This document shows, one piece after another, positions 42,094-49,301 of a DNA stretch of 64,000 nt (the stretch's first letter is position 1; the number at the start of each line of letters is the position of its first letter). Under the pieces are notes generated by a model, which made no database searches, had not been told where the DNA came from, and saw nothing but the letters and a program-made list of their open reading frames with translations. The position numbers and the translations under genes are program-made. The stretch covers positions 41,974,001-42,038,000 of the forward strand of contig NC_083292.1 of assembly GCF_963506605.1 (NCBI RefSeq), given 5' to 3'. The DNA comes from Zootoca vivipara. Taxonomy: Eukaryota.

Positions 42094-42162
42094 ATGGCCA
42101 AGGATGGAGGGGGCGAGGTCCTTGCCAGTGGTGAGGTGGGGGGCCTAGCCAGAAGCCCCAAG
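42094..42162 (+). CDS. DAPK2-like: putative first coding exon (exon 42091-42162)
   Basis: Strong acceptor TTCCTTTTGCAG, CTGATGG start context, AAG|GTGAGT donor in phase 0 with the next exon; [23 protein letters not shown]. Confidence 0.65.
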
Positions 42163-45100
42163 GTGAGTGGGTGTGGGGCATCCAGGGCTGGGCCTGGGCT
42201 GCTGCTGCCCCCTCCCCGCCCCAGCTTTGGGTCCCAGCATGCTCAGTTGAGAATTGGGTGACACAGTTAAGAGTAAGAGTTCCTTTAGCCACCAGAGACG
42301 TCTGTCTGTTGTTCCAGGAAGTATAAAACATTTCACATCAGGTGCTCAGGGTGCTTATTTTCTTTTCAAATCAGGCCAAGTGTGTTTATTTGTTTGTAAA
42401 GCATAGGGGGTGGGGAGAAAATTGTTTGTGTCAGAGCAGAATCAATGTATATTGTTGCCTGTCGCCCCAATATCTGAGCTGTGTGAGATGCCAGCGGTTT
42501 CAGACACACTCAGGGTTCATTCCTGACATGATGTATATTTTGCTCTAAGAAGCTTTGTTTGGTCAGAATTGAGTTTACACTTCCAGAGTTAAGACTAAAT
42601 AATTACTTCTGGTAAATGAGCCACCATAGTCACTAGAGGGCAGTGAAATATTGTGCCTCTGGCTTTTTAGACTTGTCTACCCATGCACTATCTGAAACCA
42701 AAGGGGCACATTGGTTGCAGGATGCTATTTTTTCCTGCTCTCTTACCCAACTACCAAGAACCTTGATTAAATTCTAACACTTACTGGGTCCAGGGATTTA
42801 GGGGAGTCTGGCACCCACAAACACATATGGTAACAATATTAATACCTAAAGAGGTTGGGGAACTTGAAGAAGACCATAAAGCCCCGGGTCCAAAATAGCC
42901 TAGTTGCACTACAGTTGGTAGAGTTTAATTACGACTGTGGGGTGGGTGGCAGGACGGGGCTGAGACCAGGGACACAGCCACCTGCTCCCGCTCTGTCCTT
43001 GAGTGGGGGCTGGTTCTGTTCCACAAGGTCCAGTTTCCCCCCAGCCTGGATGTCCTGAGAGCTCCCCCTCAGCCCTCACCTGCCTTGCCTTCTGCCCAGC
43101 ATTGCTGCTGCCAGCTACAGTGAACCTTGCCAAGTTCTTCTCCCCACCTTGCACTCAGGGAAATGGGTGCTTTGCACACCAACGGCAGGCAGAATGCAGG
43201 GAGCGGATTTGTCAGCTTCTGTGGTGAAGCCACATGGCTCCAGAGCAGGCGGGGTCCTGCTGGGGGCGGCAGGTGGGGAGGGGTGGCATCCTTTGACCTT
43301 GCCCTCCATCCCTGTTCTCTGCAGGAGGCCCTGTGCAGCCTGGATGATGATGATGATGAGGTCTTTGAGAGCCCTGACAGCCAAGGCCCATGGCCAGGCT
43401 GGGCCACATCAGCCACTTTCCGCCACTGCAGCGTGGATGAGCTTTATGAGCTGCTGGAGAAGCTGGGCAGGTGAGGAAGCCGGTGGGAAAAGCAGGGCTG
43501 GGAGGGTCTGGGGACAACAGAACGGGTCTTCTGGGCCCAGCCCCCAGCGGCATCTCAGGGAAGCTGGGAGAGGTTTCTGACAGCTGCTGCCAGTCAGTGT
43601 AGACAGTGCAGAGCTTCATGGCCCCTGCTGCTCTGACCTGACCAAAGGTCTCTTGCTGTGTTCTTATTGTTGCTGCCCTTCTTCTCCTTCTCTCCCCACT
43701 CAGCGGGCACTTTGGGGTGGTCAGGCGCTGCCAGGAGCGCTGCACAGGCTCTTTCTATGCCGCCAAGTCCGTGAAGCTGCGGAAGCAAAAGGGGAGCCGC
43801 CTGGGCCTGGACCGCGAGCAAGTGGAGCGAGAGGTCTCCATTCTCCAGCAGCTCCAGCACCCCAATATCATGCGCCTCCATGACGTCTTTGCCGGGAAGG
43901 GCGAGGTGGTCCTGATCCTGGAGCTGTGAGTGTCGGAGGGAAGGGGGCGCTGAATGGGGGCTCCAACTGTGGGACTTGATTTTGGGGTCCACACTCTGGC
44001 TTAGTATGCTGCAGCAGAAGCAGCAAGTTGCGTTGTGGTGCTTGAAAAGATTCCTAGCTTTAACAAGGAAACCTCCATGCAAATGACCGCAAAGTGACCT
44101 CCTTTAACAATAAACTCCTTTAACAATAAACCTGTTTGGAAGCCTCCAGGCTGTCAGCATTTTGCAGGAGGGGTTCAGTTGTACAGACCACACTTCTGGT
44201 TTGCACAATTAAGGGTGGAGTCAGTCAAAGGGCTCCGTCACCTTTGCACAGCACATCAACTTTTAAAAACAAATGGTCTGTTCATGGTTTGGAAGGTGAT
44301 GGAGAAATGCATAGAAAAGCATGAGATGAGCGAATGACTAAAGGGAAGGCATAGACACACCCTGTACAAGGGGAAGGAGTAGAAATCTAACTGTTTTTGA
44401 GACCTCTGTCTCCCAGTTGCTCATAAAACAGGGGGTGCCACTACTATCAGAGTGGGGGAAACTCCAGGTCTCATGACACCTTTGAGAAGGCTGCAAAAAA
44501 AAAAAAACAATAATATTTTGTAGCGCCTCATGTTTTTCTCCCCCTCATAATTCCCAAAGTGAGGCAGTTTAGGGAAGAGGCGGCATGCCCCGGGACACAC
44601 ACCAGGCCAGCTGCCCCAAATCCTCCCTCCCTCTCCCTCCAGCATCCACGGTGGGGAGCTGTTTGACTTCATCGCAGAGAAGGAGCTTCTTACGGAGACG
44701 GAAGCCATCCAGTTCCTGCAGCAGATCCTGCTTGGCCTGACCTACATGCATTCCCGGCGCATTGCTCACTTTGACCTCAAGGTACGCCAGCCCTGTGAGG
44801 AGCTTCCTGCATCCCTCTGGAGGCTTTTGAGCAACACAGGAGTCTTCTCTGAGGGCGTGTTGGTCCTATCTCCTTCCTTGATCTCTTCTGCAGCCAGAGA
44901 ACATCATGCTCTTCCAGAAGGATGCCCCCAACCCCCTGATCAAGATCATCGATTTTGGCCTGGCCCAGAAGCTTGAGGAAGGCGTGACCTTCAAAAGTTT
45001 GTGTGGGACTCCCCAGTACATTGGTAAGAGGGCAGAGCAAGCTGGGGACCTCTCCTGTCCCAGAGCCCCCGGCGGAGGAATTCCCCGTGCTCTCAGACTA

Positions 45101-48100: not shown

Positions 48101-49301
48101 AAGAACTTCCGCAAGTTCAATGCTCGCCGGAAGTGGAAGGTAAATTGAGCAGCTCCCCCCACCTGCACCCTCAAAGCCAGTCATCAAAAAGAAGCCGGAG
48201 GGTGTGGGACTTCTGTCCCTTGGCAGTGGGGGTGCCCTACTCTGACCCGAACCACTATTATTATTATTATTAGTAGTAGTAGTAGTTTCATTTATGAATT
48301 GCTTCCTGTGAGGCACTTGAAGTGATTTGCAGTGAAACAAAAGCCTATCTAAAAACAGTTGCGCACATATAAAAACAATTCAAAAATCAAAACAGCAATT
48401 GCATACAGTTGTACCTTGTGACTCAAACATTTTGGCTCCCAAACGCCACAAATCTGGAAGTGAGTATTCTGGTTGGCGAACGTTCTTTGGAACCCAAACA
48501 TCCGACGGGGCTGACGTGCCTTGGTTTTTGAACGTTTTCGGAAGTCAAATGGACTTCCGGAATGGATTCCGTTTGAGAACCGAAGTATCGGGCGTAGGAA
48601 GATAGGAGCGGTAGGGGTGGGTCACCCCGAGCACCGGGCTCCAACGGGTGCCATTGTGGGTGCCCACCCCACCCCCCGAACACGAGACATGGCCCTCCAG
48701 GAGGCGCCCCCCACCCCTGGAACATGTGCCACGCCCCTCCGGGAGACGCGCCATGCCCCTGGGAGGTGCATGAAGCTCCGCCACGGCGAAGTATGACTGT
48801 ATTTAAGCCGAGTTTCAAATCCAGGACAAATCCCAACAGTTTACAATCTCCCCTTCAAAGGCTTTTTGAAAGAGACAAGTCTGTGGCCTGTGAGGGAGGT
48901 GCACAATGTATTCCTGTGAGAGGCTCTGTGCCTGAGTCGTGGGCGTGCCTCATCTTTGCATTTCCTTTCCAGCTCTCCTACAACATGGTGTCGGCCTGCA
49001 ACCGCCTCTGCCGGATGGGCCTCTTGTGCCAGCAGAAGAGGGAGGAGGAGAACTTGGTGAGTGCCCTTTCCTGGGCGATGGCCTCCTTGCCCTGCTTCTC
49101 AAATCCTGACAAAGAGGAGGGGGCCAGTTCTGGGGACCCTTCCCTGCCTGTGACCCCCACCTCTCCCCTCCCAAGCCACCCTTGCCTGGCTTTCATCCCC
49201 TCCCTCTGCCCCCCAAACAGCGCGGCTGCGAGAGCGACCAGGAGGGGGAGGCCAGCAGCCCCGCCACCCTCTTCCGCAGGCGAAGGAGCAGCTGCTCGTG
49301 A
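42094..49301 (+). CDS. Death-associated protein kinase 2-like Ser/Thr kinase (DAPK family paralogue), ~12 coding exons, 1236 nt / ~411 aa
   Basis: Exons 42094-42162, 43325-43470, 43704-43925, 44643-44781, 44894-45023, 45863-45911, 46369-46395, 47125-47277, 47768-47813, 48050-48139, 48973-49056, 49221-49301. Motifs GSGHFG, YAAK plus basic loop, [29 protein letters not shown], CaM-binding RRKWKLS, tail RRRRSSCS*. Exon sizes 222/139/130/49/27/153/46/90 follow the DAPK gene pattern as I recall it. The start exon is less certain. Confidence 0.93.
43325..43470 (+). CDS. DAPK2-like exon (146 nt)
   Basis: [17 protein letters not shown]...[19 protein letters not shown], comparable to DAPK1 TVFRQENVDDYYDTGEELG. 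Confidence 0.85.
43704..43925 (+). CDS. DAPK2-like exon (222 nt)
   Basis: [74 protein letters not shown]. Confidence 0.95.
44643..44781 (+). CDS. DAPK2-like exon (139 nt)
   Basis: [46 protein letters not shown]. Confidence 0.95.
44894..45023 (+). CDS. DAPK2-like exon (130 nt)
   Basis: [43 protein letters not shown]. Confidence 0.95.
45863..45911 (+). CDS. DAPK2-like exon (49 nt)
   Basis: [17 protein letters not shown]. Confidence 0.94.
46369..46395 (+). CDS. DAPK2-like micro-exon (27 nt)
   Basis: SIGVITYIL. Confidence 0.94.
47125..47277 (+). CDS. DAPK2-like exon (153 nt)
   Basis: [51 protein letters not shown]. Confidence 0.95.
47768..47813 (+). CDS. DAPK2-like exon (46 nt)
   Basis: [15 protein letters not shown]. 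Confidence 0.93.
48050..48139 (+). CDS. DAPK2-like exon (90 nt), autoregulatory domain
   Basis: [30 protein letters not shown]. Confidence 0.94.
48403..48590. mobile_element. Tc1/mariner (Tigger-like) MITE fragment
   Basis: TA-CAGTTGTACCTT terminus with repeated GAAC/GTTC units. Confidence 0.45.
48973..49056 (+). CDS. DAPK2-like exon (84 nt), CaM-binding helix
   Basis: [28 protein letters not shown]. Confidence 0.9.
49221..49301 (+). CDS. DAPK2-like last coding exon (81 nt)
   Basis: [26 protein letters not shown], comparable to DAPK2 RNCESD...RRRSSTS*. Confidence 0.9.
   Translation, partial: RGCESDQEGEASSPATLFRRRRSSCS

Follow-up and report, generated by a model that had tools for sequence, protein, structure and literature searches.

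Death-associated protein (DAP) kinases have been studied almost only in mammals, which have three (DAPK1, DAPK2 and DAPK3). In the published model of the family, DAPK2 and DAPK3 arose from DAPK1 by two duplications; that model covers three genes and two teleost DRP-1 loci and does not include the lineage described here (Shoval 2011, PMC3050894). We analysed a 64,000-nucleotide stretch of the Zootoca vivipara genome (the window), which carries a DAPK-type kinase gene at 42094-49301 on the plus strand. The lineage of this PRCC-linked kinase is termed the L clade, and its members L genes.

DAPK2 (DRP-1; human 15q22) is organised like L: a kinase domain with a basic loop, an autoregulatory calmodulin-binding helix with a Trp and an inhibitory Ser, a tail of ~40 residues, and a basic, Ser-rich C-terminus. 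The folds are also alike (Foldseek template-modelling [TM] score 0.98 to autoinhibited DAPK2). However, the two belong to separate clades, and L is only as close as 59% in kinase-domain identity to DAPK2 of the same species, while DAPK2 and DAPK3 share 81%; the original prediction had described the gene as visibly diverged from canonical DAPK2, and it is. L further differs from DAPK2 in the derived motifs GSGHFG, GTPQYIAPE and SPFQG, in its locus beside PRCC, in a Cys at the position of Thr369, in an extra disordered acidic N-terminus, and in that no ZIPk-like alternative exon was found in the 64 kb. DAPK2 has such an alternative (beta) exon past the catalytic domain (Shoval 2011, PMC3050894). 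DAPK1 resembles L in its catalytic domain and calmodulin-binding segment (432 bits; root-mean-square deviation [rmsd] 0.9 Å), and the exon 10 peptide of L best matches DAPK1 280-306; DAPK1 differs in its ankyrin repeats, ROC-COR and death domain, none of which L has. DAPK3 (ZIPK) shares a 62% identical catalytic domain and a conserved intron after HFDLK, but it has a leucine-zipper tail and no calmodulin-binding segment, whereas L shows the reverse.

Taken as a whole, the following explanation is in our judgement highly likely. The locus would be a working, transcribed gene whose product is a short Ser/Thr kinase regulated by Ca2+/calmodulin and belongs to a fourth vertebrate DAPK lineage. This lineage would have separated from DAPK1/2/3 before cartilaginous and bony vertebrates parted, with the two early vertebrate genome duplications as the most likely occasion, and the gene would sit in the block equivalent to human 1q23 (NES-HDGF-PRCC). 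It appears to have been kept by sharks, ray-finned fishes, coelacanth, lungfish, amphibians, sauropsids and echidna, whereas the therian stem lineage probably lost it.

Gene structure and transcription

The kinase gene is complete, as predicted, without stops or frameshifts. It has 12 coding exons with AG/GT at all internal borders (script check), and its spliced coding sequence of 1236 nucleotides (nt) comprises 411 codons plus TGA, the final codon being the sole stop. The features of the gene are as follows.

38850..39400 (+): probable non-coding first exon and promoter region, a GC-rich island ~2.8 kb past the PRCC stop
42091..42162 (+): exon 1, ATG at 42094, 23 codons; acceptor AG at 42089-42090, donor GT; begins the disordered N-terminal extension
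43325..43470 (+): exon 2, AG/GT; acidic poly-Asp stretch and start of the kinase domain
43704..43925 (+): exon 3, GSGHFG Gly-rich loop, Lys93, basic loop and alpha-C Glu115; Pkinase 1.8e-13, profile positions 10-78
44643..44781 (+): exon 4, hinge to HFD catalytic loop (Asp190); Pkinase 2.8e-10, positions 81-125
44894..45023 (+): exon 5, catalytic loop, DFG (Asp212) and activation segment; Pkinase 8.7e-09, positions 126-164
45863..45911 (+): exon 6, APE / P+1 loop; AG/GT
46369..46395 (+): exon 7, 27 nt; AG/GT
47125..47277 (+): exon 8, alpha-F to alpha-H, with the clade-specific SPFQGETD
47768..47813 (+): exon 9, end of the kinase domain, HPWIK
48050..48139 (+): exon 10, autoregulatory / calmodulin-binding segment with Ser340 and Trp356; aligns with DAPK1 280-306 and DAPK2 278-307
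48973..49056 (+): exon 11, Ser359 and end of the autoregulatory helix
49221..49301 (+): exon 12, DAPK2-type tail (C-E-S-D ... RRRRSSCS) and TGA

The junctions expected from this model were recovered in RNA. Contigs from three studies (X1, X5 and X6), aligned to 43310-49305, show a GT..AG joint for each of the ten introns from exon 2 to exon 12, and the joints equal the predicted borders after the stated cut shifts. In stranded raw RNA-seq (X20, ~6% of the run), 8-43 reads support each of nine of these joints; first mates map to the minus strand, indicating RNA from the plus strand. The end of exon 1 was joined to exon 2 in 43 raw reads and in an X1 contig (loose end before 43323). The joint of exons 2 and 3 (43470>43704) was present in the three contig sets and in 43 reads, and the exon 4 joints in contigs of X1, X5 and X6. 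Flanking joints were supported by 8 and 27 reads for exon 5, 27 and 35 for exon 6, 35 and 27 for exon 7, and 33 and 29 for exon 11; those of exon 10 were also read-supported. The share of words found in X1-X4 is 0.20, equal to the exonic share of the stretch. The kinase gene is real, transcribed, and spliced as predicted.

At the 5′ end, the exon 1 acceptor ends three bases ahead of the ATG, and the exon starts at 42091. Some lacertid isoforms are longer at the N-terminus (P0553, P0551 and P0294), and tblastn placed these "extensions" at ~38850-39400. Because the reading frame differs between species, this GC-rich exon is most likely 5′ untranslated region. Intron 9 (47814-48049) is 236 nt long, and canonical DAPK2 has its zipper exon at that place. 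Isoform X2 of Lacerta agilis (P0001) runs into intron 9 with the same letters as the intron translation of the window; it is an intron-retention model and no alternative C-terminus. Three intron positions (after HFDLK, inside the P+1 loop and after HPWI-) are visible as read-through in mispredicted DAPK2 and DAPK3 proteins, a hint in favour of the DAPK-type exon sizes claimed in the original prediction; one of these, the DAPK3 protein P0034, reads through the intron after HFDLK, a position common to the L gene.

X1 contigs differ from the window at four places (43342, 43375, 43396 and 49004), which look like population variants: two synonymous third-position changes, one GAT insertion by which the poly-Asp run gains a residue, and a G>A at 49004 that turns Arg368 of the autoregulatory helix into His, the residue also found in DAPK2. 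Within intron 2, a 31-nt piece (43585-43615) attracts RNA reads that match nothing around it (36-38 loose-ended on both sides in X20), and the same is seen in X1, X5 and X6 contigs; transcripts of a repeat at other loci are the probable source. Contig record 8 of X6 enters exon 2 at 43316, nine bases before the acceptor, preceded by 24 unrelated letters; either an alternative 5′ exon or chimerism of the contig could account for this.

The kinase and its predicted regulation

Searches were performed with the exons one by one and then with the database protein P0550 (XP_060125745.1, Z. vivipara, 411 residues, RefSeq "death-associated protein kinase 2"). All 12 exon translations occur in P0550 in order and identical, exon 1 as residues 1-23; this per-exon comparison covers all but the six split-codon residues between pieces. 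The Podarcis and Lacerta orthologues are 90-92% identical to the window protein. The whole protein matched Pfam Pkinase at residues 64-326 (E=4.9e-77), and exons 3, 4 and 5 matched it at consecutive profile positions. Among sequences of solved structures, residues 53-411 are colinear with residues 3-361 of mouse DAPK2 (445 bits), followed by DAPK1 (432 bits over residues 54-373) and DAPK3 (387 bits). Chains of DAPK1/2/3 scored 373-445 bits, and MYLK4, twitchin, CaMKI and STK17 at most 260 bits. Exon 3 by itself gave DAPK1, DAPK3 and DAPK2 as best PDB matches (74-81 bits; next kinase 48 bits), while exon 11 searched alone had no match in the PDB.

With 67 relatives as input, AlphaFold2 gave a model that is confident in the core (~residues 53-350), with a disordered N-terminus (1-52; predicted local distance difference test [pLDDT] <50) and a low-confidence tail. 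The first 50 Foldseek matches were all DAPK1, DAPK2 or DAPK3. The core superposed on autoinhibited DAPK2 (2ya9, 2a2a) and on the calmodulin complexes 6paw and 2x0g with TM 0.94-0.98 and rmsd ~0.9 Å.

Residues of L are numbered as DAPK1 + 51. Across 67 L and DAPK2 sequences, K93, E115, D190 (HFD), K192, N195, D212-F-G and W356 are invariant, as is Ser340, the equivalent of DAPK1 Ser289. In the same set at least 90% conservation was found for Ser359, equivalent to the inhibitory site DAPK1 Ser308 (Ser318 in full-length DAPK2), and for the terminal R-R-R-x-S-S-x-S; the tail is kept from fish to echidna. The basic loop between beta-3 and alpha-C, a signature of the family, has the same length as in DAPK1/2/3, with no gap (DAPK2 version K-K-R-Q-S-R-A-S-R-R-G-V). 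The gene ends 52 codons past Ser359. The HFD loop, basic loop, calmodulin-binding segment and DAPK2-like tail named in the original prediction were thus all found by Pfam and alignment. Its claim that other DAPK modules are missing also agreed with the search: tblastn of the 64 kb (E<=1) revealed no ankyrin, ROC or death-domain sequence and no ZIPk-like leucine-zipper tail, nor did the Zootoca DAPK2-beta tail or the Podarcis lilfordi DAPK3 tail match an alternative ZIPk-like exon there. By its sequence, the product is a member of the DAPK family (CAMK group) whose kinase domain has intact catalytic residues.

The mode III 14-3-3 site of DAPK2 is RRRSS-pT-S-COOH, and the regulation of DAPK2 served as model for L (PMC8376927). 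By analogy, the L kinase is presumably regulated as DAPK2 is. The catalytic domain would be held inactive by the C-terminal autoregulatory helix; binding of Ca2+/calmodulin around Trp356 would release the block, and phosphorylation of Ser359, the presumed inhibitory autophosphorylation site, would make the inactive form more stable. Dimerisation and 14-3-3 binding could both depend on the basic C-terminal tail. The C-terminus of L in the window is RRRRSS-C-S, with Cys410 at -1, equivalent to DAPK2 Thr369; because Cys stands there, the -1 residue is not phosphorylatable. Ser409 at -2 fits the X(pS/T)X1-2-COOH rule, and in fishes and echidna the -1 residue is Ser. The range of substrates or partners may have shifted as well, as suggested by changes that are fixed across the clade in three places, namely the Gly-rich loop, P+1 loop and alpha-F/G region.

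Phylogeny, distribution and origin

A tree of 67 proteins was computed from 268 kinase-domain columns (IQ-TREE, LG+C20+F+G4). An earlier tree of 358 columns was discarded; it mixed DAPK3 into DAPK2 because the tails of DAPK2 beta isoforms align with the DAPK3 tail. Support is given as bootstrap / Shimodaira-Hasegawa-like approximate likelihood ratio test (SH-aLRT).

L clade: 100/99
DAPK2 clade: 99/94
DAPK3 clade: 96/88
DAPK1 clade, three fish fragments: 100/89
DAPK1+DAPK3: 95/82
(DAPK1+DAPK3)+DAPK2, with L outside: 87/39
All vertebrate clades against amphioxus, Ciona, octopus, horseshoe crab and insect: 99/90

The window protein does not nest among DAPK2 orthologues. The L and DAPK2 clades each include cartilaginous fishes; branching inside L broadly follows the species tree, with the window protein beside Podarcis (100/100). 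A constraint joining bony-vertebrate L with bony-vertebrate DAPK2, that is, a duplication after the shark split, was rejected (log-likelihood difference 64.9; approximately unbiased test, p-AU 2.7e-5). A constraint placing L and DAPK2 together cost 0.42 log-likelihood units and was not rejected (p-AU 0.36). In this tree, which is without cyclostomes, the duplication that gave rise to the L lineage predates the cartilaginous/bony split and postdates the split from amphioxus and tunicates. The result for L and DAPK2 leaves room for more than one order of the four clades. DAPK1 may have a similar acidic stretch past the autoregulatory helix, and the shared tail was hence not used as proof that L and DAPK2 are sisters.

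L-type proteins are widespread. Exon 3 compared with 1.84 billion representatives retrieved a small set at 67-93% identity, canonical DAPKs reaching at most 62%. With the Callorhinchus L protein (P0090) as query, 118 of the 119 clusters listed carry GSGHFG / GTPQYIAPE, the canonical DAPK2 signature being GSGQFA / GTPEFVAPE. Taxa with L-type proteins include sawshark, chimaera, sturgeon, paddlefish, teleosts, coelacanth, lungfish, caecilian, salamander, frogs, turtles, crocodilians, birds, squamates and echidna (XP_038624708.1); among the matches listed for the Callorhinchus query there was no therian one. The L clade is therefore not confined to lizards. In chicken, the L gene lies on a 3.07 Mb contig. 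L and canonical DAPK2 occur together in chimaera, coelacanth, lungfish, Xenopus, Hyla, caecilian, sturgeon, Elgaria, Tiliqua, Varanus and others. The separate DAPK2 expected in the present genome was located: canonical DAPK2 of Z. vivipara (P0582, XP_034986821.2) lies on a 54.5 Mb contig, the L gene on a 42.3 Mb contig, and in the tree P0582 stands beside Elgaria DAPK2, within the DAPK2 clade. Podarcis and Lacerta show the same pairing. Lacertid DAPK2 retains its own calmodulin-plus-tail isoform (P0579); therefore the L gene is an addition, not a replacement. Teleosts often have two L-type copies (Chanos P0211/P0236; Oncorhynchus nerka P0168/P0262), which fall into two teleost subclades distinct from dapk2a, a pattern that fits copies retained from the teleost genome duplication.

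Invertebrate DAPKs share GQFA, PEFVAPE and SPFLG with DAPK1-3, where L has GHFG, PQYIAPE and SPFQG; the L states are evidently derived, fixed early and then kept. Kinase-domain identity between lizard and cartilaginous fish is 61% for L, 87% for DAPK2 and 94% for DAPK3.

The neighbourhood of the gene is that given in the original prediction, with the HDGF/PRCC side occupied by three genes found by Pfam.

3475..4725 (-): NES (nestin-type) exon 1, intermediate-filament rod; Pfam Filament 1.9e-20
28466..29173 (-): HDGF exon 1 region, start of the PWWP domain; Pfam PWWP 1.8e-06; divergent from PRCC
30336..36090 (+): PRCC, upstream neighbour on the same strand; Pfam PRCC 2e-09 (35761-36090) and 4e-04 (34917-35522)

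On established human maps, DAPK1 and NTRK2 lie at 9q21, DAPK2 at 15q22 with NTRK3, HDGFL3 and IGF1R further along 15q, and DAPK3, HDGFL2 and INSR at 19p13. NTRK1/2/3 and INSR/IGF1R/INSRR are published ohnologue sets (PMC4898815). The human and mouse order is ISG20L2, RRNAD1, MRPL24, HDGF, PRCC, SH2D2A, NTRK1, INSRR, with no DAPK (PMC11906500), so that SH2D2A follows PRCC in human as had been stated. The tree has four vertebrate DAPK clades, and the L gene is linked to NES-HDGF-PRCC in this window. Four clades on four paralogous blocks are the expectation of two genome duplications, and we infer that L originated by them. The gene was presumably then lost in therian mammals. Gene structure, expression, phylogeny and conserved residues are shown by the present analysis. 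The original prediction had seen here the 1q-equivalent duplication copy, lost in the human lineage. The origin before the shark split and the human and mouse gene order agree with it; the loss has to be narrowed to therians, the echidna having kept the gene, and the genome-duplication origin remains the likely interpretation.

Several points weigh against this interpretation. The free tree puts L outside DAPK1+2+3, weakly, and tolerates L+DAPK2 likewise (p=0.36). The long stem branch of L (0.25) invites long-branch effects, which can explain the weak basal placement. DAPK1 is represented by three fish fragments only, and cyclostomes are absent from the tree. The PRCC linkage is known from this window alone, and therian absence is drawn from the best 120 matches listed and the published gene order. 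The L kinase domain evolves 3-6 times faster than that of DAPK2 or DAPK3, and some functions may have changed; the DAPK2 14-3-3 site Thr369 is replaced by Cys410 in the L protein.

An ancient small-scale (segmental or tandem) duplication, before or around the origin of vertebrates and with the PRCC/HDGF position acquired secondarily, is unlikely. The basal position of L, weakly supported (87/39), would fit such an event, as would a PRCC linkage seen in one window. However, there are exactly four vertebrate clades, with amphioxus and Ciona outside all of them (99/90), and the symmetric arrangement of L+DAPK2 beside DAPK1+DAPK3 (95/82) is not rejected; a long stem would itself produce a basal position, the L-specific states being derived, and the neighbouring families have members near DAPK1/2/3 on established human maps.

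The gene might instead be transcribed but decaying, coding for an inactive kinase or heading for loss as in therians. L does evolve faster than DAPK2 or DAPK3, echidna sits on a long branch (0.35), and the N-terminus is disordered and variable. We nevertheless consider decay very improbable: the 12-exon frame is intact, splicing is clean with solid coverage, the residues for catalysis and regulation hardly vary, if at all, between cartilaginous fishes and amniotes, and the clade-specific motifs are conserved rather than eroding.

A recent lizard- or sauropsid-specific DAPK2 duplicate that diverged quickly, to which the database names DAPK2 and DAPK2-like and the calmodulin-binding segment and tail common with DAPK2 might point, has next to no chance and is ruled out by the presence of L from cartilaginous fishes to echidna in a species-like tree and by the rejected constraint. 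Equally negligible is a translocated DAPK2 as the only one of the species, suggested by the RefSeq name in Z. vivipara, which is ruled out by the canonical gene on the other contig and the same pair in Podarcis and Lacerta.

Elsewhere in the window, six-frame translation of 49300-64000 revealed no SH2-type signature, and no long coding open reading frame (ORF) was present downstream of the kinase gene. CR1-like long interspersed nuclear element (LINE) reverse-transcriptase ORFs lie there at 62387-62767 and 62930-63385 (+), and no repeats of at least 80 nt were found in 42-64 kb. NES exon 1 and HDGF exon 1 are only ~24 kb apart (4725-28466). In human this interval contains CRABP2, ISG20L2, RRNAD1 and MRPL24; no long ORF of these four stood out in the ORF translations of the window, in which no aimed search for them was made.

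Naming and significance

The gene is real and already annotated; we did not find its status as a separate fourth paralogue in the searchable literature. The RefSeq names "DAPK2-like" and "DAPK2" cover the L gene in far more than a hundred species, and the suspicion that it would bear a DAPK2-type label proved right for Z. vivipara. Both Zootoca genes (P0550 and P0582) are named DAPK2. In Xenopus (P0556 and P0564), "dapk2" (NP_001088921.1, "dapk2 L homeolog" in X. laevis) is L-type, and L entries of X. tropicalis are labelled "NIMA-related kinase 2". The papers that could be searched, a 2026 family review among them, do not describe a fourth DAPK; dapk2a and DAPK2-like appear there only in passing, and neither dapk2b nor a gene called DAPK4 was found.

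Fourth ohnologues kept in many non-mammals and missing in mammals are known as Kdr-like, Axl-like, Ddr2-like and Styk1-like (PMC4898815). L shares this pattern of loss, those genes being receptor tyrosine kinases already described. Because such losses are documented, the surprise is moderate (PMC4898815).

It is fairly likely, in our view, that vertebrates ancestrally had four DAP kinases, the fourth calmodulin-regulated, fast-evolving but constrained and with its own substrate-binding signature, and that it was overlooked through therian loss and the labels DAPK2 and DAPK2-like. If this is true, Xenopus dapk2 and the "DAPK2" of chicken, alligator, coelacanth and several fishes are a different gene from mammalian DAPK2, and work on frog, chicken or fish "dapk2" may concern a gene without a therian orthologue. 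In that case the three-gene model of how DAP kinases evolved would have to be revised. The L lineage would be a natural experiment, a calmodulin-regulated DAPK with altered P+1 and Gly-rich loops.

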